In this document: one piece after another, positions 4,244-64,000 of the stretch
How positions within the stretch are numbered: position 1 is the first letter of the stretch
Layout of the letters: each line of letters begins with the position of its first letter
From: Gnetum montanum
Lineage: Eukaryota; Plantae; Gnetophyta
Length of the DNA stretch: 64,000 bases
Assembly: GCA_015680685.1 (NCBI GenBank)
Contig: MNCI01000967.1
Coordinates: 356,458-420,457 of the forward strand
Direction of reading: 5' to 3'
Notes under the pieces: model-generated
Database searches by the model: none
What the model saw: only the letters and a program-made list of their open reading frames with translations
Told to the model about the DNA's origin: nothing
Program-made: the position numbers and the translations under genes

Positions 4244-4260
4244 TAGTGCTAGAAGGAGGG
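4244..4260 (+). promoter_or_regulatory. Primer binding site (tRNA-Asn type) of element B
   Basis: TAGTGCTAGAAGGAGGG versus consensus TGGCGCTAGAAGGAGGG. Confidence 0.85.
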
Positions 4261-11600: not shown

Positions 11601-11719
11601 ACAACTCAGAGGCCAAGTGAGTAGCCTTGTTATACCAACCATCTTCAATAAGGACCTTCATCATGGTCCAAGCTTGGGTGATGTCAATAACCTTATTCTA
11701 TGACAGTAGCTTTGGAAAG

Positions 11720-12646: not shown

Positions 12647-12647
12647 T

Positions 12648-12665
12648 TGGCACTGTTGTTGGGGA
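12648..12665 (+). promoter_or_regulatory. Primer binding site (tRNA-Asp type, typical of Athila)
   Basis: TGGCACTGTTGTTGGGGA versus TGGCGCCGTTGCCGGGGA; all differences are transitions. Confidence 0.85.
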
Positions 12666-13329: not shown

Positions 13330-14200
13330 AAAGAGAGTTTCCTACCTAAGCTTTATATGAATAATACTCATAAATTTGTAGGATTATATGATTTGGATCC
13401 ATAACATCATTTACAAGACTTCCATGATGCTTGTGTATGTTACAATGTTGAAAGTGGATGGAAAAAGCTTAAGCTCTTTCCTAGGATACTAGTTAATAGA
13501 GCCAAAGTTGGGTATAGATTTTTGAAACCAAATTCAATCTAACGGTGGTTCATAACACTAGAACTCTTCAACAAGAAATACCAAACCTATGTGAGGATGT
13601 CCAACATGAGAAGATAGATCCAAGGATGAAAGCAAGAACAACATGAAACCTTGGACATGGCCTTAGATAGATATTATTCCTAGGGAGACCCTTGGGATGT
13701 ATGTCCTAGGTCAATTATACAAGATAAAAACCCCTCAAATCTAAGAACTAATCAAGCATGTGGCAAAAGAAGAAGGAGAGATGTGCAAATAGGAGAATGT
13801 TGCAAAATATTATTCAGACCCAACTCTTCAATAGAAGTAGGTCCATATCTATTGTAAGGAGAAAGAAACCACTCTTGGTAGGGTGATTCCACAATGAATC
13901 TTGGTGATACAAAAATCTATTGAAGCACTTGAAGCAAAGTTTAATAGGGTATAAGAATGGGTATACGACAAAGTTACAACTTTGGTATAAACTATAGAGA
14001 AGAAGATCATGCAAAAAAGCTAGGAGATCACAATAAACAAAGGAGGAAAAACCATGAAATAGCTAGGAACACTTATCAAAAAATAGAAAAAATGGCTAAA
14101 GAAAGTGAGGTTATAGAATCAATGGATGTGACCCATGCAAATATGACCACTCAAAGGACCATTTCCCACTTGTTTCACATCTATATGAGTATTGGGCTTC
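13330..14200 (+). pseudogene. gag: gag remnant of element C
   Basis: KFVGLYDLDP*HHLQDF...KLKLFPRILVNRAKVGYRFLKPNSI..W....ELFNKKY matches the Athila-type gag core pattern. Confidence 0.8.
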
Positions 14201-19900: not shown

Positions 19901-20088
19901 ATGAACTTTCCCAATTTTGTGTCTTATAATATTATGTCCCATTTTTGTAAAATACCACTATGGCATGTAAGAGTCAATTTCTTGTTTGTTGAGTTAGTGA
20001 ATAATTCCATGCCTTCCCAACATTTTGTAAAGAACTTGTTCCCCATTTTTTCAACTTGAAGATGAGTTTTCACTCAATCATGGGAGTA

Positions 20089-20935
20089 TGATGAGTTGTG
20101 ATTTTTTTTATTTCTGATATCAAGGCTCCAATATTAGATACATGATATTGGATCCCAACAAATGATGTCAGATATCTGATATCATCTCTTTTGTGCTAGC
20201 CTATAAATACAACACTTAAGTGCATAGTTGGGATATAGTTTGGTTGTTAGTTTTTGTTAGCTTTTCTTAGATTCTTGAATTCAAGTTCTATTATTCCTAG
20301 TGCATGCTCATAGTGTGATGTTTGTAATTGTATGGCATTCTTATTTGAGTGTGACATAGTTGGACACGTTACATGATTAGGAATAAAGATCAAGATTACC
20401 TCCATCATTGTAGCATTCACTTAGATTTAATTATTTACTATTTTATTTAGTTAACATTTTCATTTATTGCTATTTACTATTCTTGTCGTTAAGTGGAATA
20501 AGCACAATGTAATTGCAAGCACTTAAGTGTAATTACTTGGTAACCTAGCAGTGTATCATTTGGTAAGCCTAGTGACATATGCTTGGCAATCCTAGTGGTA
20601 GTTATATGAAGTCCAAGGCATGTGTGGATGATTAGGAATGGATACTATTCACACATAAGCTAGTTTATGTTTTAATTTTCATTGTTCATTCCCTTAATTA
20701 ATTTATCTCTTTCTTATCATTAGGAGTACCATAGGATTAGACAACATCATATGCCTCACTTTGGACTAAACCATATGTAATAAAGCTACCATAGTCCAAG
20801 TGGGAAGATAGCAAACTATGATTAAAGTATGAAAATCTAGATAAAAAACTAGTCCCATCGATGGAATTTTACCAAATTGTGCATGAATGCTTGTGATTCA
20901 TATGGTTGGACGTAGGGGTATCTCACTACTCATTA
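20089..20935 (+). repeat. 3' LTR of element C
   Basis: Preceded by short PPT-like catgggagta; followed by TSD GAAAG. Confidence 0.93.
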
Positions 20936-26310: not shown

Positions 26311-26978
26311 ATAGAAAAATCTGATTTTTGCCTAAAATAGCCTTCATAGGTGCCCAAACTCACCTGTCGAAATTATAACCCCTTACCATGGCCCTCTAAA
26401 GCCTAAAACTGGAAAAATCAAGCCCTTTTTAACTAGTTTTTGTCTTCTTTTATCATACATTTTTCACCTTGGCTAGTTTGACCTTGTTTCATGGTGTTTC
26501 GACTTGTTTTAAGCTTGTTATGCATTGTTAACGTTATTATCATCAGTTGACCTCATGTAGCTTCTACATAACTCTAGTGTCATCATATCTATCATATTCT
26601 CTTTATTGTAGCCTCTTTTGATCTTTTTTAAGCCTTTGATTAGTGTCAGGTGATGGGGTTTGACCATCCTTGATCATCTTTTGACACCATGTAACAATGA
26701 CCAACTAAGGCCTAAAATTGGAAAAATGTAATCATAGTTGATCATGTGTGACCTTGTATTACCTCAAAATCATACCTTATACCTTTTTTTATCCTATTGG
26801 ATACTGTCCTATTTATGAACTATTACCATGGTATTTTGCATCATTGTTAATATTAGTTTATTGGTTTTTATCGATTTTTATCATTTTGTTACCCAAGTAC
26901 CACTTAATATGCTTATGGTTGATATGCAAGATTGGAATATGGATACCTGGAAATAGATTAGTTTACCTTTGAGCCTAG

Positions 26979-29900
26979 GTGGGCCTCACAATGATGTTGA
27001 ACAATGTATTGATCCTAATTGCTTAGATCTTAAGCCTAAGAATCTCGTTGACTACATGGCTTCTATAGAGAAAATTCAAGAATGTCCTAAAAACCTAGTC
27101 AAAATCCTTGACCTTGAAGCTGGTGTCATTACTAAAGAATCTCTAGTTGAGTTTCTTATTACAACACATAATGGTGAGGAGAAAACACTGAAACTAAGTT
27201 TCTTGTTGGAATTCAAACAGGCTTAAGACATTACCAAGGTCATATAAGATAATATTAAGGTCTTTTCTTGATCATACAATGATATGCCATGTTTGGACCC
27301 ATGCCTAGTATAACATAACATCATACTTGATCCTAGCACTAAACCAGTCAAGTAAATAGTTTGTAAGATTAGACCTAATTTTTCCATATACGAACATGAT
27401 GAAATCACAAAACTATCCCAAGTTGGTTTAATTAGAGCTATTGATTACATAGATTGGGTATCCAACATAGTGGCAGTTCCTAAGAAAAATGGGAGTATAC
27501 ACATTTGCATCGATTTTTGAGACCTAAAGAAGGTAACTATCAAAGGTGATTTCCCTTTGCCTAGTATTGATCAACTTATGGATAGTATAGCTAGGCATGC
27601 CTTATTATCCTTTATGGATGGATTCTTGGAATACAACTAGAATAGGATTAACTTAAAACATCAATGTAGTATAACAATGACGCCTTGGGGGTGCCATTTG
27701 TTACACTATGATGCCCTTTGGCCTAAAGAACATAGGAGCAACCTACCAAAGAGCTATGACTTATATTTTTAGTGACTATATGCTAGGTTTGATCAATGAT
27801 TATGTAGATGATATAGCTTTTAAGTCCAAAGTGGTCAACAACCATGTGCATGACCTTGATCTTGTGCTTAAATGATGTCTCAAGTATGAGCTTAGGCTTA
27901 ATCCCAAGAAGTGTGTCTTTGGCATTAAAATCAATAAGATAATTGTCTTTGTATTATCTAAAGCAAGGATAGGTTTTGATCTTGATAAGGTTAAAGACAT
28001 ATCCAACTTGGTAGTACTAACTAACCTTGAGGAGCTTTAGGGACTACAATGTAAATTACAATTTATTTGTATGTTCATTACTAGGCTCACAAATACGCTA
28101 CAACTCATGCAACACTTGCTTAACAAAGGAGTTCACTATTAGTGGGTGGCTCTATGCCAAGAAGCCTTTGAAAGCCTTAAGCAAGAGTTGGCATAACTAT
28201 TAATGGTCTATTTGCCATAAAAGGATAAGTCCTCTTATATCTACCTTGCTATCTCTAATTCATTCATTGCCTCTCTACTCTATCAGAAACAAGATGATGG
28301 AGTAGAGCTACCTGTATACTACTTAAGCCCTACATTAATTACATATGAGACCCAATACACCAAAGTGGAGAAGTATTGTCTAACACTAGTCTTCCAATTA
28401 AAGAAGTGGAGACACTACCTATTTAGAATCCAAGTTAACCTCATTTGCAAAGATAACGTACTTAGATCCATAATAATCAATATCTATGAGAGTATCTGGA
28501 TAGCCTATTGGAAAGCTATAACAATGGAATTTGACCTTCATTACATCTCCCAAGCCTCAATGGAAGATCAAGCTATAGCTGCACAACTCACTACTTCCTT
28601 TATTGATGACTATGCAACCATTGACACTGAATTCCCTAACAACTATGTCAACATCATTAGCCACATACTTAAGAGTTATGAGGCCATCATGAACTTTGAC
28701 AGAGCTTCAATTACCCATGGGGCCAATGCTGCTACCATTTGAACATTCCCATCTCGTGAAATCCAATCCCTCACTTACCATTTCAAGTTTTCATGTACCA
28801 AAAATGTAGAAAAGGATGTGAGTAATTGATTAGGAAAATGATGATAGCTCATGATCAGGGAATACAATGCTTAATGATCAAAGGTGATTCACAAATTGTG
28901 TTCATATAAGTAATAGAAGTTTATGCATGTAAGAAAAAACATTTGCAATCTTATTATGAACTAGGAAAGAAACTAATGCAATAATTTATAGACATTGATA
29001 TTCAACATGTACCCCAAAATGAAAACACCATAGCCAATGCCATTGTAATGCTAGCCCTCAATGTGACATCAAATTTTTTTAGCAAGTTACCTTCCTTATT
29101 TGTGAACTATGATATTTTCATCATGCAAGACATTGAAGATGACTCCATAGCTATGGTTTATATTGCTACTGCAAAGGAATGGTATGATGATATTAAGTTT
29201 TACCTTATGTATGGTTAACCTTTACAAGGCCTGACTACTGCTCAAAAGGATGTTGTATGAAAAAGATCAAAACCATATCTCATAGTAGATAATAACATAT
29301 TATGTCAATGATCCTATTATGGTGTATTGTTAGTATGCTTAGGTAAATCTAAAGCTTTCACAATCCTAGAGTAAGTTCATGAGGGTGTATGTGGGGGACA
29401 TATAAGACCTAGAGCCATGATGGAAAAGATTAAATAGTTAGGCTATTATTGATCCTACATGAAAAGTGACTACTTGTAGAAGGTTAAAACTTGTGACACT
29501 TGTCAATGGCATAGCAACCTTGTACATGTATCACCAATTGAGTTACATAACACTCAAATAACTTAGCTATTTCAATGGTGGGGGTTGGATATCATTAGAC
29601 CCACAACACCTAAGTCTTCCATAGAGCATAGCTTTATCATTACTACAATTGAATACTTCACAAAGTGGGTTGAAGCTATTTATCTAAGGAAAAAACATTT
29701 CAAAAGTTTATAGATTCATACTGGATAACATATTAGCCCATTTCGGTATACCTATGATCATTGTCATAGATAATGTATCATAATTTAGTAGCCAAGAAAT
29801 GAAAAAATTTTGTCACCACCTAAGCATTAAGCATTCCTTCTCATCACCATATTACCCTCAAGACAATGGGAAGCTGATGTAAGAAATAAGGATATCATAG

Positions 29901-30417
29901 AATTTCTCAAGAAGATGCTAAATAATAATAAACACAAGTGATATGAGTAGCTTATCCATGTACTTTGGGCCTATCGAACCACATTTTGAACCATAACTAG
30001 TGTGATCCCATATAGCCTTGTTTATGATTCTAATGTTATTTTACCTCTTGAATTACAAGTTTCATCACTTCAAGTAGCCCTATAAAATTTCATCAAAGAT
30101 GAATACAACAAGGAGTTATGCACCATGGATCGAGACTTAGTGGAAGAGCAATGAATGTGAATGCTTGCTCACATCAAGTAGTACTAGGAGAGGAAAAATA
30201 GGAGCATCACCATGACATAAATAAGTACAAGATTGAGGAAGGAGGCCTAGTTCTCAAAGCTATTTGTGATCATGAAGACAAATTCTCAACCAACTAGGAA
30301 GGGCCCTTCTTGGTCACTAAGGCCTACGACAACAAAGTGTTCAATATAGTAGACATGGATGGGAATGAGTTGGCCAATCCTATCAATCATTCCTACCTAA
30401 AGCCCTATCACATGTAG
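26979..30417 (+). pseudogene. pol: pol of element B: RT - RNase H - additional RNase H - integrase
   Basis: WVSNIVAVPKKNG, DFPLPSIDQL, MPFGLKN, YVDD (27801-27812), VEKYCL...WRHYL, aRH (NFDRAS...GDSQIV...HVPQNEN), HEGVCGGH..CDTCQ, WGLDII, YFTKWVEA, stop after LKPYHM. Confidence 0.95.
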
Positions 30418-30461
30418 ATTGTAAGAACCAAAAGTTGGTATCAATTATCTTTGCAATCAAT

Positions 30462-31702
30462 TATTTACCTTTTGGTATGTCAAAACTTTAAGAAAAATGG
30501 AAAACAAGGATGTTTTTGTGGTTGCTATGTTTATAGGACAAGAAATTAAATTGAGACATCTACAACATTTCAAGAAAGTATGCAGGAGTTCAAAGAGCAT
30601 GGACAAGGAGTGAAGACTTCAAATCTCATCTCTGATGATCAAAGGAAAGCCTTAAGTGTAGAAGAATTTATGGTAGAAATACATCTCCAAGAAACAATAG
30701 ACATCTCCCATCAAATGAAGACGTCTCTTAGCAACAGTAGACATATTAGCTAAAGAGAAGGAGAATTAGTGAAGATGTCTTGCAAAAATAGCAAACATCT
30801 ACTATTAAGCAAAGACATCTAAAAGAAATAGTGGATGTCTTGGCCTAGTTGAAGGTTGCTTAGAAGAAGATGTCTCCAAACAATAGTAGACATATTTCTA
30901 GTAAGAAAGACATCTTCATGAAGGCATCTTCATAAAGACATCTTTCTTGTAGAAAATACATCTTTCCCAAATGAAGGTTTGATGTAGAAAGACATCTTAG
31001 TCTCAAAGATGTCTCTAGCAACCATTAGATAGCCATTACATAAATTCCAAGGTGACTTTGGAAACATATTAGCTATAAGAAGACTTCATTCCATTGGAAA
31101 ATGTGCAAGCATTGTGTAGTATCAATTGTCATTATCAAGAAATCATTGTATACATCATTCTATTGTTATTGTTCTTCATTATACCATCTTTTATCTATTG
31201 TAAGTGGCCAATACAAGCTATAACTCAAAGTACAAGGATTATAAAATTTAGTTACATTCTTTCCTTATGATTGTTATTCTCTTTTGTTTCCCTATGAGGT
31301 TGATGTGATTTTTTGAAAAGGCATCTTACCTAAGCTTGTTGGGATCCTACGAGATTGAGTGTTTGTGTAGTACCTCAACACTCTATAGTGGATCTCAAGT
31401 TATAAAGGATGTGGGATTTTGGAAATCACATTCTAAACTTGTTAGGACCTTATGGGTTGAGTGGATTTATTGCATTGAATCACTCTTGAGTGAAGCTTAG
31501 AGCTTGTACAAGGTGTGGTACCCTTCAAATCACATTTTTAGAGAAAAAATGTCTAGAGGTATGCTAGCAAACTACCCTATGAGTCTGCACTACCCAAGTT
31601 AGAGAATCATGTTAAAATTTGATATGTGCTTTGGCTAATTAATTTATGTTCTAGAAAACTTATTCACACCCCCACCTCCCTTTCTAAGTTTAATGATCCT
31701 CA
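30462..31702 (+). repeat. 5' LTR of element D
   Basis: tatttaccttttggtatgtc...gatcctca aligns with 45519-46757; many AGACATCT/AGATGTCT motifs at ~30550-31020. Confidence 0.92.
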
Positions 31703-31704
31703 AT

Positions 31705-31716
31705 TGGTATCAAAGC
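31705..31716 (+). promoter_or_regulatory. Primer binding site (tRNA-iMet)
   Basis: TGGTATCAAAGC, one mismatch from TGGTATCAGAGC, 2 nt after the LTR. Confidence 0.92.
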
Positions 31717-45395: not shown

Positions 45396-45517
45396 AAAAA
45401 GGAGGAGAAGTGTTGTGCTGATGTATATTGATGAAGTATACTATGATCATGCTTATGTATATTGTGATTAGACTAATCCATTTTCTTAAGTTTTGAACAT
45501 TATCAAAAAGGGGAAGG
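45396..45517 (+). promoter_or_regulatory. Two polypurine tracts of element D
   Basis: aaaaaggaggagaag (45396-45410) and aaaaaggggaagg (45505-45517) upstream of the 3' LTR; multiple PPTs are typical of Sireviruses. Confidence 0.8.
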
Positions 45518-45518
45518 T

Positions 45519-46757
45519 TGTTGACTTTTTGGTATGTCAAAACCTTAAAGAAAATGGAGATCAAGGGTGTTTGTGTGGTTGCTATGTTTATAGGGAAAGA
45601 ACTTGGATTAAGACACATACAAGGCTTCAAGAAAGAATGCGAGAGTTCAAAGAGCGTGGACAAGGAATGAAGACTTCAAAGATCATCTCTGGTGATCAAA
45701 GGAAAGTCTCAAGTGTAGAAGAACTTTTGGTAAAAAGATGTCTCCAAGAAATAGTAGACATCTCCCATCAAACAAAGAGATCTCTCAGCAATAACAAACG
45801 TCTTGGCCAAAGAGAAGGAGAATCAGTGAACACATCTTACAAAAATAGCAGATGTCTACTATTAAGTAAAGATGTTTCCAAGAAACATCATACATCTTAG
45901 TTGAGTTGAAGGTTGCTCATAAGAAGATATCTCTAAAAAACAACAAACATCTTTTTGGTGAGAAAGACATCTTCATGAAGATCTCTCCACAAAGACATCT
46001 TTCTTGTGGAAAATATGCCCTTCTAGAATGAAGGTCTAATGTAGAAAGATGTCTCAATCTTAAAGAAGATGTCTCCAGTGACTATTAGATAGTTGTTATA
46101 CAAATTCCAAGGTAATTTTGAAAACATATTAGCTATAAGAAGACGTCATTCCATTAGTAAATGTGCAAGAATTATGTATTATCAATTGTCATTATCAAGA
46201 AATCATTGTATACATCATTATATTTTTATTTTTCCTTATTGTACTATATTTTATCTATTGTAAGTGGTCAAAGTGAGCTGTAGCTTAAAGTAAAAGGATC
46301 AACAAATTTAGTTTCATTCTTTCCTTGTGATTGCTATTCTTTTTTTTTTTTTGCCTTGCAAGGTTGATGTGCTTCTTATGGGAAGGCATCTTGCTTGAGT
46401 TTTTCAAGATCTTGTGGGATTGAGTGTTGGTGTAGTGCCATAATACCCCATAGTAGAGCTTAAGTTGTAAATGTTGGAGATCCTAGAAATCACATTCTTA
46501 GCTTGTTAGGACCTTGAGGAGTTGAGTGGATTTGCTACCCAAAGCACTCTAAAGCAATTCTTAGAGATTGTATAGGGTGTGGTACCCTTCAAATCACATT
46601 TTTAGAGAAACAAAGTCTAGAGGTGTGCTAGCAAACTACCCTCCAAGTGTGGACTACCAAAGTTGAGGAAAAAAGGCCAAAATTTGGTGTGTGCTTTGGC
46701 TGATTAATTTTTTTGGGAACTTATTCATCCCTCCCCTTCTAAGTTCAATGATCCTCA
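45519..46757 (+). repeat. 3' LTR of element D
   Basis: TGTTGAC...GATCCTCA. Confidence 0.92.
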
Positions 46758-47769
46758 CTAATGACAAGTGAGCTTACATGACCTCTTTCCATCTTTTTGC
46801 ATAATAGGTGAATTGTCAAAATTTGTAACACGTGACCTATGGTAGCCTCGTTTGCTGATAATTTTATATGGACTTATGCATTATCATGTAACAACATTGT
46901 ATCTTTTTCTCTTGGAGTTGTGCTTGTAGGATGAAGCTTGGAGTCCTCACAAAGGTGCAACTCATTACGACAACAAGTCACCACATGACCTTGATGTGTA
47001 AGATTCTGTGAATTTGTCTTGCTATGCCAAGATTGCTTATGTCACTTACCTCCTATTACCTTTTCCTTAAGCCCAACCCTATACACTAATTATAAACTTC
47101 CTAACCCTTAAGTGAAAATGTTGACCAATGTTTAACACTCATTTATTATGGTCATTTGACATCTTCTTCATCATGCTCCACCATCAAGTCTATTGAGTGT
47201 AACACATCTCATTTAATGGGAAAACCTTCAAGTCCATTGAATATAACACATCTTATTCAATGGGAAAACCAAATCAAATCTAGCCTTGGTAATGAAACTC
47301 AATGAAGGTTTCACCCCATAACAAAATTAGGGAAGAAAATTGTGAAGAAGTTGAAAGGCCAATGAGGATCAAAAGATAAACCAATGGCTCCAAAAATTTA
47401 AAGAGAGGAGCCTAATGACCAAAGAAAACCTTGGAGTAAAGTGTTGGTTCCTCAAATGCATTGTTAAGTGACCAACACTTCAAAATGTGAAGCATGAAGA
47501 TTTATTAATTGACCAACATGTTACTACTATATCATAGCCATGATGTCAATATTTGGAACTCACTATCAACCTTGTGAATATTTTCCTATAGCCAAAAGAT
47601 AGCCCTTATCCTAACCTTATCCCATCATCATAAGCACTCTTTAACATCGTTTAACATTACTAAATCAAGTGGGAAAAGGGAACATTGGTGATGGATCTAT
47701 AGTAGTGTTTTTTATTCTTTGTTGATGTCTCTAAGTTTAATCCTCAAGACACCAACAAAGAGGGTCTAA

Positions 47770-49137
47770 TGAAACACCACCATGAATACACGTTTTAACC
47801 TTTTTAGTATTATAACTTTCACCCTATGAAACTTGAGGTTAAAATACCACTATAAAATGTAGATATTGTAATCCATGAGATGCAATTTCACATACCTTAA
47901 CTTTTGGAGCTAAAAAAATGCATCAAAAGTAGTCATAGCCTCAATTCTCAAGTGAAAAAAGGTCATATCATGCCTATATTTGAGCTTGGAAGGATAAGAA
48001 ATGCCTTTTGGACTCCCAAAATTGGCATTTTAATGGGTTTTGTGGGATGTATCACCTTTGCTACACTGGAGTCACCCATGCTCAATGTTGGGGGGTTTAG
48101 CTTCTACAACTCTATCGTGTCTTTAGCAATCCTAGCATTGCTTTAGTAGCCCTAGTGTTGCTCTTGCTCCAACATGGATCATATAACCCTAGCATTGCTT
48201 CTAAAGTTCATCATTCTTAGAATTGATCTAGTAACTCTAGTATTTCTCTGGCAGCTCAAGCATGCCCCCAACAACCCCAACATGGCTCCTGTAGGCTCAA
48301 CGTTGTTCATAGAAGGTCAGTGTTCTTGGAAGAAGCCAACATAGGTAAAATTCTAATTTACTATTTTTGGTAATTAGAATCGTTTTGGTACCTTGTAAGT
48401 ATCAAAATATACTATAAATGAAAACAATGTTGGATTTGGACACCTACTACACTTGCAAGTAATATCAATTTGTCAACAATTAAGATAGAAATTTGTAGCC
48501 AAAATTATGACCATGAAACCTATATCAATCAAGATTGAACACCATGAAAATATTTCACTATTTTGGAGATTCCACCACTATGGCATTCCATAGTTTTGAG
48601 AATTCATTGTAAACAAAAGGCTTTTGGAGCATTCTTAGCATGAAACCTACAACCATTTTGACCACTGTTCAACCCCTGAGATTGTGTGAGATTTTGTGAC
48701 AATGTTGAGCAACCTAGGCATCAAAACTCACAACATGGCTCTCCCTTGTGGCCTAAAACCCCCACACATCTCACCCTCCCTATACCACCAACACTACAAA
48801 TTTGGTGAAGGGAACTGGTAAAGTATTGTAGTTTTAGTAGTTATGAAGCATCTAGATCATGGAGCAGATTATGGTGTCTAGGGCTACAAGCTTCAATAGA
48901 CTCCAAACCCCCATTGAAGTGCATCCTTTGCAACCCAAGCACCATTTTTACACATCCCGAGCTCTTCTTTATTTTCAACATTTTATTGCAATAAAGTTTA
49001 TAGTTCCTTTTTTGTGCAAATTAGTATAATTTTGTGTTATTTTGTGCACTTGTTTTGAACTTGACCTACATTACTTTCATTTCCATTTACACTTGGTAAT
49101 TCCCTAGGTGATCAACAAGACCATCTAGGGCACCTCA
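47770..49137 (+). repeat. 3' LTR of element B (cut by insertion of E)
   Basis: Starts TGAAACACCACC right after PPT aaagaggg (47757-47764); similarity to the 5' LTR stops exactly at E's terminus. Confidence 0.88.
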
Positions 49138-52489: not shown

Positions 52490-52830
52490 CGTTATGTTGC
52501 GCGCCTAGTTTAAGGTCTTGGTAGACCATTAGATGTACTAGTTTAAGGTCCCAACAAACCGTGATGTGCTAGTTTAAGGTCCTAGTAGACCATTGTGCTA
52601 GTTTATCATCATAGTGGATGGTGGAAGGGCTAGTTTAAGTTCATAGCGGACCATACTGTGGGTGCTAATTTTATTTCATAGCCCAAGGACTTGTTGTGCT
52701 AGTTTATAGTCATAGCAGACTATTTGTGCTAGTTTTGCATCATAGTAGATATTTTTTGCTAGTTTTACATCATAGTGGATGATCTATGCTAGTTTATAGT
52801 CATAGCGGACTATCGATGCTAGTTTACCTT
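52490..52830. repeat. ~30 bp tandem array (GCTAGTTTA core, ~11 units) immediately downstream of E pol
   Basis: gctagtttaaggtc / gctagtttatagtcatagc(g/a)gac repeated; tandem arrays in 3' UTRs are known for Ogre/Tat elements. Confidence 0.9.
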
Positions 52831-52833
52831 GTA

Positions 52834-55800
52834 TTAGATGTAGTATGGCTTGAGGTACAAGCAGTTCACAGGATTTGCAAACTCTTTGCCATCCATATTG
52901 GCTAGTTTGAAGGCCCCATTGTCATAGGCTTTGGTGACTATGAATGAACCTTCCCAGTTTGCTAAGAACTTTCTTACATGTTCATGAACAGCTTTGAGAA
53001 CTAGGTCCTCCTTTTTAATCAGCCATTGATGTAGATTGAAATGATGCTTTTTCCATCACTTATCCTGGTACCATTCAATGCGATCAAGTATTTGGACACA
53101 CTCTTCTATGGAGTCAAGGTTAATGATCCTTGACTTGTTGTTTTGGGCTTCATTCACAATGCTTGAAAGGATCATCCATAGTGATGGTACCTAAAATTCA
53201 AGAGGTAACACTGCTTTAGATTCATAAATAGGGTTGTAGGGAGTCTTACCTGTGGCCATTCTGCACATCGTATAGTAAGCCCACAACACGTAGAGGATTT
53301 GCTCATGCCATCACCTCTTGCTACTACTAAGCATCTTTTTAAGTAATTTGATGATGGACTTGTTTGTTGCCTCCACCTGACCATTTTCCTATGGGTAGTA
53401 TGGTGACAAAAAGGATTGCTTAATGTCAAGGTGGTTGCAAAAGGTTTTGGTTTCCATGCTATTAAATTATGGCCCGTTTTCTATCACAATAGTCATGGGA
53501 AGGCCAAACCTTGTTACTATATTGTCTAGGATAAAGTGGCAAACCTGTTGGGATGTAGTCTTCCTAAGGGGGATAGCCTCTACCCACTTTGTAAAGTACT
53601 TGGTGGTAGTGATGATGAAGCTATGTCTTGCGGAATACTTAGGTGTGATGAGTCCTATGATATCTAGTCCCCAACGTTGGAATGACCACGTAATCTATGT
53701 AGGATGCAACTCAATAGGTGAGACATGTATAAGATTTACATGACGTTGTCATGTATCACATGTCCTAACTTTGGCAAGGCAATCTTGTTCAATGCAAGGC
53801 TAGTAGTACCCTAGATGTCTAATTTTCACTGTCATAGCTCTAGGGGCTATATGTCCTCCACATAATCCCTCATGGATTTTGTTAACAATTTTTTTTGCTT
53901 CCTCCCCACCAATGCAAGTTAGTAATATCCCATCAAGGAGCGTTTACGTTGGGTGTTATCTCTTATAAGGACATACTGTCAGTCTCCTTTTTGAATTTCA
54001 TCCTTTTGTGCAAATGTCAAGCCGTTTGGGGGTTTGCCTTATTAAAGATAGGCTTTAATGTTAGCATACCACTCTTGGGTATCAGTAGTGTTAACAATTG
54101 TAATCTGTGCTACTCGGATGATAGGATCAATGCATTCTATTATTGAAGCAGGCAAAGTTGCAAATAGGTGCGATGGCACATTCAATGCTAACGTGGCTAA
54201 GGAATCTACTACTGTATTCTCGTTGTGGGGCACGTGTTGGATGTCTATCATTGTAAACTATTTCAAAACATTCTTGGCCAAGTCATAATAAGGCTATAAG
54301 TGTGAAGCTTTACCGGAATAGACTTTGGTAATTTGGTTGACAACAAGTTGGGAATTGCCTCGAATTGCCAAATGTTGGACCCTTAGTTCCTAGGCTGCCA
54401 AGAGGCCCTTAATGAGTCCTTCGTACTTAGCTACATTGTTCATACAAAGGAATGTAAAATGGTAAGCAAAAGGTAAAATATCCCTAGAGGGGAATGTAAT
54501 GATGGTAGCAGCACTACCACCTTGCATAGTTGAGGCACCGTCGAAATGCAAAGTGGCTTCGAAGTGTAATGGCACAGGATTGACATTATTGACATGTTCA
54601 TTGGGGAACTCTATCTCTATCATTACTTGATCATCGATGGGTGAGGTTGTGAGCTATGTGGCTATTTCTTATCCCTTTGTTGATGATTGGGCAGCATAAT
54701 GCAAATTGAATTCTACTATTATAGCTTTCCACTAGGCTATCCTACTAAATTTGTATAAATTGTTTGTGATAGCCCAAAGTATATTACTCTTACATATGAT
54801 GTTAACTTTGTTGCGAAAGAGGTAGTGTCTCCATTTTTTTAGTGAAAACACTAAGGAAAGAAAATTTCTTTCTACTTTGTTATACTTTGCCTCATAAGCT
54901 ATTAATGCATGGCTCAAGTAATAAACTAGGATTTCAAAGCCATCATCTTTCTTCTGACATAACAATGCTGAAATAGATGTGTTCGAGGTGGCAAGGTAGA
55001 TGTAGAAAGGCTTATCCCTCTATGGTGGGTAAACAATTTGGAGGTTCAAAAGCTCTTTCTTTAAGTCATCGAAGCCTTGTTGACATTGTTCTATCCACTC
55101 AAAGTTGACCCCCTTCTTGAGCAAGTGTTGCATGGGGTGTAACTTGTAGATCAACCTCACTATAAACCTTCTGATAAACTATATTCTACCTTGCAACCCA
55201 TGTAATTCTTTAAGGTTGGTAGGGGATGCTAGGTTAACGATGGCCTTAACTTTGTCAGGGTCTACTCATATTCTAGCTTCCGATACTACAAACCCTAGCA
55301 TGCATCTAGTTTTAACTCCAAAAACACATTTCCTTGGGTTGAGATGCAAGTCATGCCTGTGACAATGCTTGAGGACTACATCTAGATCATTGGGATGATC
55401 AATAGCTCCTTTAGACTTTACTGCAATGTCATCCATGTAATCATTTAGTCTCTCCAAGAGGTAGTCGCTAAAAATGTACTTCATGGCTCATTGATAGGTT
55501 GCTCTAGCATTTTTGAGCTCAAAAGGCATCATGGTGTAACAAAAGGTTCCCCAAGGGGTCATGAAAGTAGTTGTTAACTGATGCTCTGGGTTGATGCAAA
55601 TCAGGTTGTAACCTGAAAACCCATCCATATAGGATAGCAAAGCATGACTAGCTGTAGTGTCAATAAGTTGATCAATACTCGATAATGGAAAGTCATCTTT
55701 GATTGTTGCTTTGTTTATATCTTGAAAGTCTATACAAATTCATATACCTCCCATGTTCTTAAAAACCACAATGATGTTTAACACCCACTCCAAGTAATCA

Positions 55801-56256
55801 ACCATGTGAATGAAACCAACTTGATACAGCTTGATAATTTCATCATGTATAACTAGTGCGATTTCGGGTTTGATTTTTCGAGCCTTTTTCTTAACTGCTT
55901 TGATACAAAATTCTAAGACAATGTTGTGTTGTATGAGCCATGGGTCTAAGCCCAGCATGTCATCATAAGACCATGCAAACACCTTAACATTGTCTTGGAT
56001 GACTCTAGATATGTCTTTTTGCATTTGTGGATCTAGGAGGGAGCTAAGTTTTAATGTATTTATTTCCCCCTAGATATACTTATAGGTATTTCAATGAGAG
56101 GATCCTCAATCACATCCCCAGCCTCTAAGTATAAGGCTTGGACTAGATGTTTGGGCCAATCTAGGGATGTTTCCAAGGACGCTATGGTGTTGTCAATAGA
56201 TGATTCCCAGTCTATTGATTCTAAGTTTAGGTATCTCATAAGCCTGCCATGAGGAC
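52834..56256 (-). pseudogene. pol: pol of element E: RT - RNase H - additional RNase H - integrase
   Basis: ORF fragments VFAWSYDDMLGLDP, NDYMDDIAVKS...LNPRKCVFGV, KKWRHYL, HFDGAS...NNVAKYEGLI (aRH), HVPHNENTVVDSLA; integrase KYFTKWVEA; ends LKPYYI*. Confidence 0.95.
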
Positions 56257-56805
56257 CTGTCAAGGTTAAAAGAGAATGTTGATCACTGTGCATAGTCATT
56301 TTTGTTAAACCTGCCACAATAGAAAGAAAGACCAAGTCAAGTGATACTTGTTTGTAACATGTAATGAATGTTTGTAAAGTAATAATACAACATGGGATAA
56401 TTGTCAATTACTATGTAAAGTTTGCAAGTTGCCAATTTAAGATCTTAGCAAACCATTAATAGGTTTGAAAATGCAAGGGGCATTATCTTTGCTAGTTTAA
56501 GATCGTAGTGGACCATTAATGATGCAAAACTTGGTCTAAGATATGAAATGAATGCTAAAATCGTTAGTTTAAGGTCATGGCAGACTGTGATTAGGCTACA
56601 TTGTAGGTTAGCATCCCATGTAAATTAAAATTGCTAGTTTAAGGTCTTAGTGGACCGTTAATGGGTTTGAAAATTTGGTGGGCCCACTTGCTATGCTACC
56701 AACGAGTGTTACGCTATAACAAGATTTTACTATAGTAGCGCTATGCTATGGGGGCATCCCATGTTACTTGGGATGTGAAAATGACAATTTGTTCACTGCG
56801 TCAGC

Positions 56806-56813
56806 TATAAATA
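56806..56813 (+). promoter_or_regulatory. Putative TATA box of E's antisense gene
   Basis: TATAAATA ~150 nt upstream of ATG 56957, just after a GCTAC/GTAGC motif cluster. Confidence 0.6.
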
Positions 56814-56956
56814 GTGGTTTACCCCCTAGTAAACTTGTCATTTTCATTATTAGATCCCAGAGCCCATACTCAGAGCATACCGTGGTGGCACAAAGAGAGA
56901 GAGAAAGTGAACTGGTGTAATGTAGTAGTTGGTAGAGACAATTCACGAGCGGGACA

Positions 56957-59900
56957 ATGGCACCCAAAGACGAACGCAAGCATTGAGGACTTGCCAAAGT
57001 AGATGAGGTGAAGGACTCTCTAGGATGTTTATCCAAGGTGCACGTTGAGGTATGACAAGAGACTCCATCAGCTTGGTAAGTCACTATGTTATCCTTATTT
57101 TTGTTGCCGTTATTTTGATGATGTTTGCATCTATTTATACCATTTTAGTTGTTGTTTTGGCTACTATGCTGTTGTTGTTGCTAGTTGGCCACAACAGCCG
57201 TACGGATGCTACGCTATGGCTACATGCAGTATTGCCCTAGCTGCCATTGTTAAGAATGGAAACTACCTTATCACGAGTGTTTGGGAAATTCTGAGCAGTG
57301 TAGCACATGCTTGGCACAACTTACCACCCTTAGAAGGGTTTAGTTATTTGTGAAAGTTTTTATAACAACGTGATGCATGTTTAACGTAGTGTAGCATGAG
57401 TTATTTCATGCAGCAAGATAGGGTTGGGATGGTAGGGGCACTGTGGGTTCTCTCTCGTATGCACGATTTAGACTGTAAGGTTGTTGTTTTTATGCTACTT
57501 TGCTTATGCTATGAGGCCCTTAGGCCATTCTGTTGGCAATCTATCATATTGCTATGCTATAAAAATTGTAGCACTACTACATTGTCAAATTCATTATACT
57601 ACCAAATTTGCCATGCCACGACACCGACCACAATGCTCTATTTGTTATACATTATGTTGCATGCGATGCGTTCATCTTGCTATGCTACATGTGATGCAGT
57701 CGTTATCCTTACACGAAAGTGTTGGCTATTATGTTATGTTGTGTTGTTTCATGTAACCTATTACTATTGCATCATGGTGTGCACCCATTGTTGTTATGCT
57801 ACGCTACTCCCAACTCTCTCTTTTTTGTTAGTATGTTGTATGAAATATTTACCTTTTTTACACTGTGTAAATAGAGGGTCAGGCTACACTATGTGTAAAC
57901 AGATGGTTATGCTATGCTATGTGTAAACAAATAGTTACGCTATGCTACATGTAAACAAATGGTTACGCTACACTATGTGTAAACCTCACCTGAACACAAT
58001 GCTAACATTCAATGCTTTATTATGCAAGGTCATGTTTAAACCTATCCTGATTGTCCTTGAGATTATAGGAGTCCTGTGCTACCTCAGTGAACCAGTGGCC
58101 AATGTCCCTCCTCCCCATGCACACATGGGGCAGCAGGCAGTTTAGTTCTGGGAGGGTGCATGGGACTTCTTACAGTTCCTCCTCCACCATTTTAGTGTGA
58201 TCGTGTGGTCACACTTATCAGCTGAGACAATGGCCACAATTACAGAAACACTATTGCCCGAGGTGAACCGGAGCATTCTAAAGTTCCTAGCTAATGGGAT
58301 GATCAGAGGTGAAGGTGCAACAGGTTCCAACTAGCACCCAAAAGGCTTAAGGCACTTAAGTTGGATCTGGGACATGCCTAAGTACAAATGTTATCACTTA
58401 TATAACACATTATATGTTACCTACCACATGGGCACTTGTTTTCAGAACCCACCTAGAACCATTTATTATGCTGATAGGTGAGTTTTGTGGAGGTATCTTA
58501 ATGTGTTGTATAATCTGTGTTACACTATACAAAGGTGTTAACTACATCTTTGTGTATTGCCAAGTTTTATATTGATAGGAATGGTCTTCACAATGATATA
58601 GATGCCTTGGCATTGGCACAGACGACCTTGCAAGAGTTCTCCTCTACCGAGAATGTGTGTGTTGGCATAATAGGACAACTTGGGCTTAAGTTTAAAACCT
58701 ACCCAACCTGGTATTTCCAATTTTATGGGAAGTCTAAGGAGGTTGGTTTATTGGATAGGGAGTGGGCATCCCTCAGACCACTTACCATTGAAAACATGCT
58801 AGTGGAAATCCCACCATTTCCTATGTCATTTAAACCTGGTATGCCAAGCCATGCATTTGTTGTTATGTTTTGAAATGATGATGTTCTATCATCATTTTTT
58901 TATTATTTTTTTCTAACTTTTTTCCTTTTTTGTTTTGCAAACTATTACAATGGTGACAGAATCCCAAGAGGTCACTATGATCACCTTTGGGTGTAATGGA
59001 ACCAACCTCTTTTTCAAGTACGAGGAGGTGGAGGAGACACAGCATTGGCTCTGCAATGGGGTCCCAGCCACCTTTGTCCACAACCTTCATGAGGCTAGGC
59101 TCATGGACTTATTTTTAGCTATAAACCCAAGTGTCTCGCCTACCAAAATGCTTTCCCTAGCCGATTCCTTCTTCAAGAAGGCTAACTGCTTCTATATACG
59201 TGTTCACTATGTATGGGTGGTGTTTGAAATCAATGACCAATTATTTGTGGATCTTTTCAATGTTCCTTTTGATGGTCTCCCTGTAGGAGAAAAATCTAAG
59301 AAAGATGCGAACCATCAGGGGGACATCGAGGAGTGGCTAGGGACAGCCAAGGACCGAAAGGGGTTCTACATTGAGAAAGTCAAGCTAAGGGTGGCCAAAA
59401 CAATTTACCATGTCTTCCGTGCCTGTTCCTTCTCCAAGCTACTCTCCCAAGGAAAAATTCATGGAGCGAAGCAGGCTTGGATAACAAGGGATGTGATGGA
59501 AGAAGGGACTCTCTACAACTGGGCCAAGTACCCTTACAAAGGCTTGTAGGCTGAAATAGTTAAACTTTGTAGGAATCTTGAGTCCTATTTCAATGTGCAC
59601 CACATCTTTTTTGTAGCCTACCTGTGATGCTTTGTGAAATTCTTGGTAGTCCTTGAGAATGACATTTTGGTGTAACAAGACCGTAGTTAGATTTCCAAAT
59701 CATGGATTTGCCACGTTTTTCATACCACATGATCCCAAGATCCCCCAGAAGTTATTGGGAAATCATTTTTGATAATGACAAGGGATCAAGTGGCACATCC
59801 TTTTCATGCCCAAGATAGCATGGAAGAGGCATTCCCCATTAACATAGGTAATGTGAAAAGGGGAGAACGCCTCATTGTAGAAATAGTGACAACTAGGTTG

Positions 59901-61670
59901 CAACGTAAGAAATCCCATCCCACCGAAGAGCCTCCCCATACAAATGAAGAGAGGGGGAAGAAGATGAAACTCAAAATTCACAAAGTGTAGCCCCCAATTG
60001 GTAAGCGTGTTTAACTATTTGGTTAATGCTTGCTACGCTGTGCTACGCTAGGTAGCATTGCATGGCGTAGCATCTATTCTGAGTTGGTATATCTTGCCTA
60101 TTGTAATTATGCTTTATTAGCAAAGGAAGGAGAAGAGGAAGGGGAGGAAGAGGTTGTGGCCCCTAGAACAGGGGCAACTAATGAAGATGAAGAGGCCTTG
60201 TTCATAGAGAAAAGTCCTTGGCTAACAAAGAAGGGGCCCTTACTACAGAAGAAAGGGCCTTGTCCAGTGAGGAAGAGGCCCCTGTTGACGAAGAGGAGGC
60301 TCTCGCTAATGAGGAAGAGGCCCTTGCCAATCAAGAAGGCGTCCCTATTGATAACCCTTTTGTCAAGTGTGGTTTAGTACCAAAGGAATGTATGAGTGTT
60401 GAGGACACTACTATGCTATTGGGTCAGCTAGAAAGAGAGGGGCTCTAGTTTGACGTTGGTGATCTTGATCACTTGTTTGACAGTGTGTTGATGGGTGACC
60501 CGACCCCCCCCCCCCCCCCCCCTACCACTATCACCTCTGAGGGTTTGCTGGGTAGGAGCTTTACACTATCATTTACATCATTCATTAGCTTTGTCACTAA
60601 GCTTTTTACATTGTTGGAATTTCACCATGTCACTGTGACTAATTCCCTTCCGTGTGTGGTTGGTGGCCTCTCACCTCAAGTGGGATCCCAAGCATGTGGT
60701 TGAGGTCGATGTTGTACCTAAATTTTTACCAGAGGTGACTAAAGTACCTTGTCACATATACAATGAAGAAAATAAATGTGTGTTGTACTCGACACGCTCT
60801 TTGTGGAAGTGTAGGTGTGTGAATGAAGACCTCTGGAAATGAGTACAAAAACTTGAGTGGGAGAAGGCCAATCTAACCACTGAGGTGGGGGATCTCCAAT
60901 CCAAGAATGAATTCCTATTGGCCTAGGATGCTAACAATGGAAGTTAGCGTACAGCTGTCATCAACTATGCAAGATATTGGATGGTCATGTAGTGCAAAAA
61001 TGAAGCTAGATGTGAAATAATCAAACAACATATGCAAATGGACCTTCTAGCCTAGAAGAATTAAGATTGGAAGGATTATAGCACAAAGGTTTATGAGTGG
61101 GGGCAAGCATAGAAGAACCACAAGCACATGTATAAACTAGAATGTGCCGCCTACCATAAATAGTATTGGGATGCCTCAATCAAGTTGCATACCCATGAGC
61201 TATTCCTTGACATTATTGGTGCTTTTGGGGCTTACCACATGATCATGCAATAGGTGACAGTCAGTGAATCTCCCAAAAGGGAGGTGACCCTACCTACGGG
61301 TGAGACTACCACTGCCACCTTTTCTCCAGGACCACCCAAATGGATAACTGTAGAAAAGGAGAAAGTTGTAGCAAGCACTGATCTAGGGGATAGGAACTAG
61401 GCCAACATCATTGAGGAGGAGATCCTACAATGTCTTGCAGCCGGCATGGATCGGATACCCCCCGAAACAAATGTAGGGCCATCTCAGGTTAGTCACTTTT
61501 TTTGGTGCCATATTTTATTTTATTAAAGCCCTTATTGTAGCTTTAATTGATTATTTTATTTTCTTTGTTGTGTAGGATCTAAATGAAAATGTATGACCCA
61601 ATGAAGCTGGGGATGGTAGTGTGGGTAGAGACCCATAGCATAGTGGCGGGGAATTTTATTCTTGTCTTTA
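56957..61670 (+). pseudogene. Antisense multi-exon accessory gene of element E (FCP1/NIF-like, transposon accessory domain, acidic repeat, coiled coil)
   Basis: Exon 1 56957-57075 then GTAAGT. Exon 2 from 58028. Donors GTATGC 58839, GTAAGC 60001, GTTAGT ~61488. Acceptors ttattag 60120, ttaccag ~60732, tgtgtag ~61576. T-rich introns; peptide homology to B's antisense gene. 3' end approximate. Confidence 0.82.
60180..60350 (+). repeat. 21 bp coding repeat (EEEALAN-like, acidic)
   Basis: gaggaagaggccc(c/t)tg...aat units; peptide EEEAPVDEEEALANEEEALANQEG. Confidence 0.8.
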
Positions 61671-62072
61671 AATTTAGAAAAAAACTTATAAAAATTATTG
61701 ATTAGTATTGAATGAAGAATGGAATGTGAGGAGATTTATTTCATTTTGGCTAATGCATTGTATCATTTTTATTCTTTGTCTTTTTTAAGCTCCCAAGGCC
61801 ATTTCATGCCATCACTAATTTTAGGCCATTTCGGGCCATTGTGATAAAAAATTTGCTAGTTTTAGGCCTTAATGGGCCGTGGTGTGATGCAAACAATAGA
61901 AATAATTTGAACAATGTAATTAATGAGGAATATGCTAGCATAAACATTGAATGTGAAGCAAACGACGTGAGCAGTGGATGTATTGTTGATGCAAGCAGTA
62001 ATCATGGTGGAAGAAGTGAAGTAGTTGTGCTAACGCAAGTAACGATTATTCTCGTAGCTGCTTCCTAACCCA

Positions 62073-64000
62073 TCATGGGCTCGGTGATGTGTACGGCTCA
62101 GGGGCCTTGTTATGATGCTCTTTTATGTCATCATCTACTACTTGAAAGGGCAGCTCAACCCATGTTGCTTCCTCGTTTGAACCGGTTTCAACTTGTTTAG
62201 GTGTTTCAGTTTGAACAGGGGTTCGGTCTTCAAATATTTTGACCTTTGACCCTTGCTCCATTCCTACATTATTTATGGCTTGGGGAGCCACTTCATCACC
62301 ATGAATTATCACTTCCCCTCTTGCATAGGGTAAGTGAATCTCCTAATGTATTGGAGAGGAAACAACCCTCAATTGGGCCAACCACGATCTCCCTAGGATC
62401 AGGTTGAACCCAGGCATTTCTTCTATGACTATGAATATTGTGCTTATGGGGAACTGGTCCCCTACGACAAAGTTGATATGCATAGTTCCTTTTACTAGCA
62501 CACGCACCCCATTAAACGATTTCAAGCAGGATGTCGTTGTGGGATTAATTTGATCTACCAAGACCAATTTGTCCACTATGGGCAAAGGGATGACATTAGT
62601 AGCAGCCTCATCATCAACATGTACCCTTCAGATCCTATGTTGTTTGACTCGAATCGTGATGAACATAGGTGTCGTTGTCACCTAACCCTTTTCAGAGTTA
62701 TCTTTAATGGAATCATCATGGAATGTTAACTGAGATGGCCATGGTTCCTTGGCTGTAGAGGGAAGCATAACAACGTGAATCACTTCCTCCTCTGCTAACA
62801 TATTTTCGTTAATCGATATGGAAGTTAACATGCAAATCATGGCCTCATGATGTGTAGTAGAAGTCATTACCAAGTCATACAGGCTCAAAGTTGTTTTTTT
62901 CTATTTCAAAGCCTATTTAACTTGGGTGAGGGTGTTGAACAGATCTTGCCCACCATCTTGCCTCTTACTCTTTTCCTCCTCCATTTGTCCTAGAAAATAG
63001 ATCTCCCAAGGAGGGGGAACTTTAGGTTGAGGGTTTTGCTTTCTTGGATAATATGGTGGCGATTGCTTCTATGCAACATTATCGGTTGTTGATGATGAGG
63101 AGACCACAGGCACTGAGGACAAGGAGGTAGGCTTGGGAGGACCTAAGGTGGTGCGTTCCTTGGCCATCTTATCTGCTGAACGCTCTTCCCATTTTTTTGA
63201 ACTGAGGGTGGGGGGGTGGGGGTTGCAGGGCTATTTTATATGGTTTTCTCTATGTAATGGGGGTAGTTGAATGTTTTGGCACCCTAATGAAAAATGATGC
63301 CTATGGTGTTGGTGTGGGCAGTGGTGTGGGTTTGAGCATGAAAGGTGTAGGGGCAGATGTCTGAGGAGGAACTTTAAGGATGAATGGTTGTTGCAGTGTC
63401 CTTTTTGTTTTTGTTGGTGTTGCCATGCTACATTGAGGCACACACACCACGAATGGTTGCTATGGTGGTTCTGGGTTACTGTCAATGACAATCGTGTTGA
63501 TGATATACCCTGTGTTATTGGCATTGAGGGGGTCCTTGTAAATGTGCATGGATTGGTTTTCAAGGTGGATAGGACTACTCTCATCTAGGACAAGCTTGCC
63601 CTAATTGACAATGCATTGAATGTCATCTTTCAATGCCAGGCAATAATCTATGTCATGACCGCATAGTTGATGGTAATCACAGAACCGTTCCAACCTAAAA
63701 TTCTTAGGAACTTGCGACTCATTGGGTGTGGCCAAGGAGGGGTCCCTAAGAAGTTTTCAATATGGCTTATGACGCTATGACGCTTAATCGCTTCCTCCGA
63801 CATCTGCTTCTACTAAATATATCTAGCCCCTAACAATTGCTTTAGGAGTTGTGAAGGCTTAACGGGTAAAGAAGTGTACTTGGAGGGATCATTGTGCTCA
63901 AAGTTGGGTTTAGGCTAGGTTGATGTCTCTAGTGCTAATGTTGAAGGCTAACTGGTGTTGCTTGAGCCAAATGTTGTTGTTGTGGCTACCTTTTTATTGT
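62073..64000 (-). pseudogene. gag-pro: gag C-terminus and protease of element E
   Basis: Zinc knuckle FCDYHQLCGHDIDYCLALKDDI (~63625-63690); SLYDLVMTS; HVDDEA; FNLILGRSWLAQL; collinear with B 6850-8560. Confidence 0.92.

Follow-up and report, generated by a model that had tools for sequence, protein, structure and literature searches.

What occupies the interval of about 5.8 kb that separates the gag-protease and pol regions of a Ty3/gypsy retrotransposon in the genome of Gnetum montanum? The window analysed here is a stretch of 64,000 nt from this plant (contig MNCI01000967.1, positions 356,458-420,457; assembly GCA_015680685.1), and the comparison rests on two copies of the element within it, one on the minus strand (E) and a diverged one on the plus strand (B). 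A preliminary description of the window had placed a ~5.8 kb gap between protease and reverse transcriptase (RT) in E, holding an opposite-strand unit with a TATA-like motif, an ATG, coding blocks and T-rich GT..AG gaps. The gap was found between the gag-protease stop at 62073-62075 and the resumption of the RT frame at 56256 on the minus strand, and all the listed features were seen in it, the use of the TATA-like motif and of the ATG being putative. The favoured explanation, to which we assign a probability of about 0.7, is that E and B represent decayed copies of two diverged Ogre-like (Tat clade) Ty3/gypsy subfamilies whose gag-pol spacer carries an antisense gene of six exons, five introns and about 870 codons.

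Homology and coding signature of the opposite-strand unit

At the protein level, plus-strand blocks of the E spacer aligned with the minus strand of the protease-RT spacer of B, in equal order and relative orientation. A tblastn match between the two spacers had an expectation value of 3e-23 over 134 aa. In the blastp searches in-frame stops were read as X. Together, tblastn and these X-through blastp searches gave values of 3e-23, 2e-20, 6e-18, 4e-20 and 5e-13, every match lying in frame 0 of E and following the order seen in B. Five high-scoring segment pairs of 44-89 bits fell in a single reading frame of E (stops as X), as listed here with the plus strand of E against the minus strand of B:

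E 58023-58295 against B 22253-21984: 64.7 bits, 35% aa identity over 91 aa
E 58845-59339 against B 21413-21030: 89.0 bits
E 59430-59978 against B 11718-11167: 80.9 bits
E 60567-60917 (44.3 bits) and E 60930-61427 (87.8 bits) against B 10591-9708

These five colinear pairs bear out the claim of a homologue in B at the equal position and relative orientation, and blastn of the E spacer against the B spacer returned zero matches, in line with the lack of similarity by eye that had been noted for the intervening non-coding DNA. The DNA of the antisense unit is about 50% identical between the copies. Matches of the sense-strand frames of the spacer reached at most 49.7 bits and were scattered over several frames, which is what shadows of a true antisense frame would look like. 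That the matches stem from chance reading frames or from conservation of the sense strand is barely credible: repeat-rich DNA does create a spurious 178-aa frame at 57390-57923, but the expectation values reach 1e-20 or better and are confined to one plus-strand frame, and the sense frames score lower.

Because the unit is common to two strongly diverged copies in equal place and orientation, it is a feature of the lineage rather than a private insertion. The private insertion that B does carry, a nested long terminal repeat (LTR) element, is easily told apart from it. Neither terminal repeats nor a target duplication bounding the antisense unit was found.

The aligned blocks also carry a coding signature. 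Identity between E and B at the first, second and third codon positions was 0.51, 0.64 and 0.35 in the antisense blocks (286 codons), compared with 0.54, 0.74 and 0.41 in gag-protease and 0.70, 0.74 and 0.47 in pol. The same pattern was obtained for the core of exon 2 (0.61, 0.76 and 0.29), for an ungapped run of 151 codons at 59430-59882 (0.56, 0.58 and 0.37) and for the most stop-ridden third (0.55, 0.65 and 0.31). In the selection check that had been proposed for this unit, the proportions of synonymous (pS) and nonsynonymous (pN) differences were not equal, at 0.75 and 0.44 over 720 codons; the corresponding values were 0.86 and 0.37 for gag-protease and 0.70 and 0.29 for pol, and all are given without a numerical ratio of substitution rates (dN/dS) since synonymous sites are saturated. 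Saturation at third codon positions, conservation at second positions and pS and pN values much like those of gag-protease together indicate that selection acted on the protein encoded by this frame during the divergence of the two subfamilies. The protein would have been constrained and would have evolved at about the pace of Gag.

In-frame stops were found in both copies, 15 in E only, 21 in B only and 2 in common. Their mostly copy-specific distribution points to independent decay, after insertion, of a frame that was once open; gag and pol of both copies are also broken. Frame 0 of E contained fewer stops than the other frames in exon 2 (1 versus 2-9) and exon 3 (6 versus 9-22), and in exon 5 (10 versus 10-25) its count tied with that of one minus-strand frame. 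The two shared stops lie at the same aligned codons (59547-59549 and 59730-59732 in E; 11601-11599 and 11418-11416 in B) and bracket a 186-nt stretch that still has the coding signature. They may reflect either parallel decay at mutation-prone codons or readthrough or an alternative exon.

A passive relic would be another source of an antisense coding frame. In that case the spacer of the common ancestor would have received, in a single event, a gene of foreign origin (an accessory gene of a DNA transposon, say) or part of a transposon, and the element would have carried it since then without benefit. Both observed copies are dead, the unit is flanked on either side by a motif of about 32 nt, and the Atlas leads for the central domain of the protein are accessory families of plant transposons (DUF1985, 0.87; plant mobile domain (PMD), 0.84). 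However, over the distance between the copies a functionless passenger would have lost its frame, and here second positions remain conserved to about the degree seen in gag-protease despite the saturation of third positions. The stops are copy-specific, terminal repeats and a target duplication were not found around the unit, and the flanking motif has a further match past integrase, at 52566. We consider a passive relic unlikely.

Proposed exon-intron structure of the antisense unit

The proposed gene model in E, with the corresponding parts of B and the element that interrupts them, is given below; a slash marks an exon-intron boundary, and the T content is that of the coding strand.

56805-56814, plus strand: TATA-like motif CTATAAATAG, recognised by sequence and position, of putative function
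56835-57075, plus strand: putative exon 1 (5' untranslated region, ATG at 57052, 8 codons), low confidence, the start guessed at about 30 nt past the TATA-like motif
57076-58028, plus strand: intron 1, 953 nt, GT..AG, T 0.37; the B acceptor at most 1 nt off the aligned position
58029-58308, plus strand: exon 2, 280 nt, one in-frame stop in E; B 22248-21962
58309-58959, plus strand: intron 2, 651 nt, donor G/GTGAAG, acceptor ..GACAG/, both in phase 1; B 21961-21419
58960-60000, plus strand: exon 3, 1041 nt, 6 in-frame stops in E; B 21418-21017 plus 11719-11150
60001-60120, plus strand: intron 3, 120 nt, donor G/GTAAGC, acceptor ..TATTAG/, phase 1 on both sides, T 0.40; B 11149-11018
60121-60551, plus strand: exon 4, 431 nt, with a frame change in E; B 11017-10834, end aligned by eye
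60552-60680, plus strand: intron 4, 129 nt, GT..AG, T 0.38, donor conserved; B 10833-10468
60681-61487, plus strand: exon 5, 807 nt, 10 in-frame stops in E; B 10467-9661, also 807 nt
61488-61575, plus strand: intron 5, 88 nt, CAG/GTTAGT .. TGTGTAG/, T 0.56; B 9660-9558
61576-61700, plus strand: putative last exon (exon 6; 6 codons, stop at 61594-61596) and 3' untranslated region, proposed from sequence only with low confidence, not alignable with B
21017-22248, minus strand: proximal part of the unit in B, consisting of exon 2 (22248-21962), intron 2 (21961-21419) and exon 3a (21418-21017)
9558-11719, minus strand: distal part of the unit in B, consisting of exon 3b (11719-11150), intron 3, exon 4, intron 4, exon 5 and intron 5
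11720-21016, plus strand: unrelated nested LTR retrotransposon that splits exon 3 of B, with LTRs at about 11720-12735 and 20089-21016 (end within about 10 nt)

Intron 2 is the best supported of the five, with donor, acceptor and phase matching exactly between the copies, whereas the positions of the other introns correspond to within a few bases. In both copies the homology stops at G/GTGAA and restarts after a pyrimidine-rich AG, with the B boundaries at 21962/21961 (G/GTGAAT) and 21419/21418 (..TTGTAG/), also in phase 1. Its length is a multiple of 3 in both copies, and in-frame stops follow within 8 and 13 codons past the donor. For intron 3, B has a T-rich gap (0.53) of 132 nt that ends in ..CTTGTAG/ at the matching place, its donor being guessed. 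The end of exon 4 is marked by the motif D-L-D-x-L-F ... E-x-L-G, followed at the equal codon position by G/GTAGGA in E and G/GTATGA in B; the phases of intron 4 agree in B and are 1 nt out in E, consistent with decay. Intron 5 corresponds in B to a gap of 103 nt (T 0.54) ending in ..CTACAG/, with a donor at most 1 nt off the aligned position. At the 5' end, the ATG at 57052 is followed by the donor G/GTAAGT at 57075/57076, in phase 0 with exon 2. No counterpart of exon 1 of E or its ATG was recognised in B, which has a TATA-like motif, CTATAAAT, about 1.1 kb upstream of its exon 2.

Base composition follows the same division. On the coding strand the T content was 0.35-0.56 in the introns and 0.22-0.27 in the exons of E, and 0.35-0.54 in the introns and 0.25-0.33 in the exons of B. 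The introns show no matching rise in A, which is the strand-specific bias of plant introns. Taken together, five GT..AG introns at conserved places in a predicted antisense gene receive good support from the comparison of the two copies. The intron-containing coding gene that had been proposed for the gag-pol interval is upheld, as a predicted gene, by the coding signature and by these conserved introns.

The unit might instead be coding and unspliced, with two or more separate antisense open reading frames (ORFs) and fast-evolving linkers in place of introns. In favour of this, a single frame of E accommodates all conserved blocks, the lengths of introns 2-4 are divisible by 3, and the longest frame has an opening ATG at 58950, immediately upstream of the conserved block. 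Nevertheless, B has no ATG at the matching place, and in both copies in-frame stops come directly past the donor of intron 2, where the homology breaks off and resumes in matching phase. The gaps are also T-rich on the coding strand only, in both copies. An unspliced arrangement is therefore quite unlikely, and a spliced gene is preferred.

Several parts of the unit contain repeats or differ in length between the copies. Intron 1 of E contains a 28-bp tandem repeat (57864-57984) and DNA rich in GCTAC and GCTATGCTA, which gives rise to the spurious frame at 57390-57923, rich in Cys, Tyr and Leu; intron 1 of B also has local repeats, of a different sequence. Exon 4 of E includes a 21-bp repeat that encodes an acidic sequence of the Glu-Glu-Ala-Leu-Ala-Asn type (60291-60338) and a run of about 17 C (60506-60522). 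The length of this exon, 431 nt in E versus 184 nt in B, implies that the protein region expands and contracts. The nested element of B belongs to another family; its LTRs are about 77% alike, its target-site duplication is not clean, and about 22-25 codons of the antisense gene are missing at the junction.

The host element and a candidate sense intron

Pfam matches and frame analysis identified E as a Ty3/gypsy element on the minus strand. The parts of the two copies are as follows:

62076-63914, minus strand: gag-protease coding remnants of E, with several stops and frame changes; the frame ends at the stop 62073-62075
62298-62300, minus strand: predicted sense donor CATG/GTGATG of E, phase 1, last exon base 62300
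52837-56256, minus strand: pol of E, with RT, RNase H, a second RNase H-like domain and integrase (Pfam RVT_1, RT_RNaseH, Integrase_H2C2 and rve)
55269-55487, minus strand: RVT_1 of E (Pfam)
54735-55019, minus strand: RT_RNaseH of E (Pfam)
54393-54653 and 54045-54257, minus strand: pieces of E like an archaeal-type RNase H (aRH), the first with an Atlas score
53803-53943, minus strand: Integrase_H2C2 of E (Pfam)
53470-53694, minus strand: rve of E (Pfam)
6839-8556, plus strand: gag-protease of B, the diverged second copy
26969-30414, plus strand: pol of B

The gag-protease region of E is homologous to that of B at 31-51% aa identity, and its protease was assigned from motifs by eye, Pfam giving no match; the pol DNA of the two copies is about 65% identical. 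Between RNase H and integrase, E has a conserved stretch of about 260 aa. The piece at 54393-54653 is 51% identical to B and had an Atlas score of 0.96, with 203 features shared with Streptophyta clusters that contain RVT_3/RNase_H. Sequence searches of this region against Pfam and PDB gave no match, and the assignment to a second RNase H comes from Atlas and from motifs recognised by eye. A second RNase H of the archaeal type in this position is characteristic of the angiosperm Tat subclades Ogre and Retand (PMC6317226), and the order in E (RT, RNase H, aRH-like, integrase) is the order expected for them. The hallmark of Ogre is a gag fused to protease and a spliced spacer before pol, with a mean length of 274 bp (PMC6317226, PMC4408406). 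The separation of gag-protease from pol is present in E, and its spacer, about 20 times the mean Ogre length, may be spliced from the sense RNA. The host had been described as a Tat/Ogre element, and this type is supported because both the domain order and the gag-protease/pol split agree with it; E looks like an Ogre relative with a spacer about 20 times longer.

Extra ORFs were looked for in two further regions of the element. An extra ORF 3' of integrase common to E and B was not found, as this region had no frame-specific conservation and contained only DNA-level repeats, in all frames. Other Ogre traits are a tRNA-Arg primer binding site and, in 57% of Ogre elements, a sense extra ORF with a plant mobile domain upstream of gag. 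No long frame was found at the latter position in B (4140-6839), which was not scanned against Pfam, and the decay of B makes this a weak negative.

Splice signals of matching phase flank the spacer on the sense strand. A phase-1 GT at 62300/62299 in E and at 8449/8450 in B, where the motif and phase of the candidate donor match, would restore a Gly codon. On the other side, a phase-1 acceptor (..TTGACAG/) lies at 56257/56256, where the RT frame of E begins, and B has ..CCTAG/GT in equal phase at 26978/26979. With this candidate donor and acceptor, a sense intron of about 6 kb would be formed. The conservation of the acceptor before RT also argues against an assembly chimera or independent insertions, in which gag-protease and pol would not belong to one element or the unit would have been acquired separately. 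In favour of such a reading, the LTRs of E lie outside the window or were not resolved, which leaves E a presumed single element; yet the order gag-protease, antisense unit, pol recurs in equal relative orientation in two copies whose spacer DNA is unalignable, which leaves a chimera highly improbable.

In the favoured explanation, a short spliced spacer of the Ogre type would have grown to about 5.8 kb and its opposite strand would house a protein gene, with the TATA-like motif on the RT side and its end on the protease side. Transcription of this gene would start at a promoter of its own, and the transcript would be spliced. As the gene runs antisense to the genomic RNA, its introns would not be recognised in the sense RNA and would survive reverse transcription intact. 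In the sense RNA, a single intron of about 6 kb, comprising the entire spacer, would be removed to give Gag-Pol, as in the Ogre elements of pea and Medicago, and cargo carried within a sense intron would leave the polyprotein undisturbed. The protein may be an element-encoded accessory factor with a role like that of the antisense PMD-coiled-coil or Transposase_28 ORFs 3' of pol in other Tat lineages; as a guess, it could be a nuclear regulator of the expression of the element itself or of host silencing. A broader proposal is that a whole lineage of Ogre-like elements houses, in its gag-pol intron, a functional antisense gene that has several introns and encodes an orphan protein family, the intron serving as a cargo bay. 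In that case sense and antisense splicing of the same DNA would determine whether Gag, Gag-Pol or the accessory protein is made. This broader proposal is tentative, at somewhat below even odds.

The flanks of the spacer share a motif of about 32 nt, with the core TTGCTAGTTTAAGG..TTA.TGG.CC. Four copies lie at 56425-56658 and a further match at 61849-61880, which places the motif at either end of the protease-RT spacer; it recurs just past integrase at 52566-52591. In all, 4 matches were counted versus 0 expected. Words resembling it were found in B near 26372-26419 and 26690-26720. The motif may act in cis in the sense RNA, or it may be what is left of a repeat array.

The predicted protein and known systems

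The six exons are predicted to encode a protein of about 870 codons. The longest open stretch of the unit in E (58917-59546, 210 aa) falls mostly in exon 3, and exon 5 has a heptad-like stretch rich in Leu, Glu and Lys near its start. By eye, a motif L-F-N-x-P-x-[DE]-G and this helical part of exon 5 recall the extra ORFs with a PMD plus a coiled coil of Tat lineages III to V (PMC4408406), which we take as a lead. In Atlas the central domain pointed weakly to plant hypothetical proteins (0.90) as well as to DUF1985 and PMD. A single-sequence AlphaFold model had a predicted local distance difference test (pLDDT) value of 37.8, too poor for a fold search, and an Rfam scan of the spacer returned no match.

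Specific families were considered. Plant mobile domain (PF10536), Transposase_28 (PF04195), Transposase_32 and DUF1985 gave no profile match for any piece of E or B. A phosphatase of the NIF/FCP1-SCP type (PF03031) in exon 2 was suggested by one match of 37 aa in E only (expectation value 0.042, 14 bits versus a cut-off of 21.8). Neither the B piece nor a profile of E and B searched against all PDB chains gave a NIF match, the DxDx(T/V) position has no Asp in either copy, and the supposed C-terminal half lies in intron 2, so that a phosphatase is not supported.

A number of points weigh against a functional, spliced antisense gene. Both copies are pseudogenes, and E has at least 18 in-frame stops and the frame change in exon 4. 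Since a protein search was used to find the alignments, the codon-position statistics are skewed towards appearing coding, although this bias is an improbable cause given how large the effect is and how long the ungapped stretch runs. Exon 1, the promoter, the last exon and some of the junctions are weak, and several junctions lie 1 nt apart between the copies. On the sense strand, the donor GT is embedded in His-Gly-Asp codons that are themselves conserved, and its presence in both copies therefore adds no separate evidence of splicing. Exons and stop-free pieces of E and B, searched separately, had no Pfam domain (hmmscan, expectation values up to 10). A phmmer search of 58917-59546 against 1.84 billion representatives found 0 relatives, and neither a word-indexed search of 58935-59546 in a set of 5.8 billion nor a profile of E and B found anything. 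The function of the protein is a guess.

Ogre of pea and Medicago belongs to Tat lineage IV (Neumann 2003 and Steinbauerova 2008, as summarised in PMC6317226 and PMC4408406). Its spacer is removed by splicing from a portion of the transcripts, and Ogre elements carry their extra ORF (PMD plus coiled coil) in sense orientation on the 5' side of gag. The Gnetum element resembles the pea and Medicago Ogre in its gag-protease split from RT-RNase H-integrase, its second RNase H and its large size. The spacer in those elements, however, has a mean of 274 bp and no cargo, whereas here it is about 5.8 kb with an opposite-strand gene. Antisense extra ORFs are known from Tat III and V (PMD, or PMD plus coiled coil), from Retand (Transposase_28), and as gene23 of maize Grande and in rice RIRE2 (PMC4408406, PMC11963269, PMC7264820). 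A review of extra ORFs and a survey of Retand place antisense ORFs between pol and the 3' LTR (PMC7264820, PMC11963269), and Ustyantsev et al. described PMD ORFs in both orientations, located at the 3' end when antisense and at the 5' end when sense (PMC4408406). The predicted gene shares with these ORFs its antisense orientation to gag-pol, its conservation in a lineage and presumably a promoter of its own. It differs in that those are single ORFs between pol and the 3' LTR, whereas this unit lies between protease and RT, would have five introns and has no Pfam match to PMD or Transposase_28. Full-text searches of the open literature turned up no description of a gene between protease and RT, subscription papers being outside their scope. 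The unit may be a variant form of the accessory antisense ORFs known from Tat elements, one that sits at a protease-RT site and has introns, in a way that appears not to have been described previously.

More distant parallels are found outside the Tat clade. HBZ of human T-cell leukemia virus type 1 (HTLV-1) is an antisense retroviral gene with its own promoter, a spliced mRNA and one intron; it begins within the 3' LTR and is situated on the 3' side of pol and env. It is, like the predicted gene, an antisense protein gene of a reverse-transcribing element, and it differs in belonging to an animal retrovirus, in its single intron and in its 3' location. The antisense promoter of HTLV has been mentioned in the context of extra ORFs (PMC7264820). 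In the Drosophila element TART, introns are reported to occur only in the antisense transcript and so to survive retrotransposition (PMC1636488); TART is a non-LTR element and is not known to have a separate conserved antisense protein gene in a sense intron. Ogre-like elements of orchids carry an extra ORF for an AlkB-type demethylase (PMC9289625), recent proof that relatives of Ogre fix helpful extra genes. That ORF, however, runs in the sense direction and encodes an enzyme domain that is already known, and a single ORF covers gag and pol there.

Plant LTR retrotransposons commonly carry extra genes, which are poorly understood. If the favoured explanation is true, the Ogre intron would be a permissive site at which cargo can be fixed without breaking the polyprotein, and antisense orientation would let a retroelement carry an intron-containing gene, the mirror image of engineered retrotransposition reporter cassettes. 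Selection would also have maintained an orphan protein in subfamilies of an abundant repeat that have diverged deeply, which would make this protein a candidate for regulating transposition or silencing. Under the broader proposal, there would be a natural case in which an intron-containing gene is copied, introns intact, by an LTR retrotransposon. Annotations of repeat-rich plant genomes will list units of this kind as genes of the host.

Elsewhere in the window, a plus-strand segment of about 3.6 kb (45515-49135) matches two parts of the surroundings of B at 79-81% DNA identity, one just past its integrase (30458-31705) and one upstream of its gag (3524-4140). The segment is probably a long LTR of a B-like family, either solo or part of a third copy.

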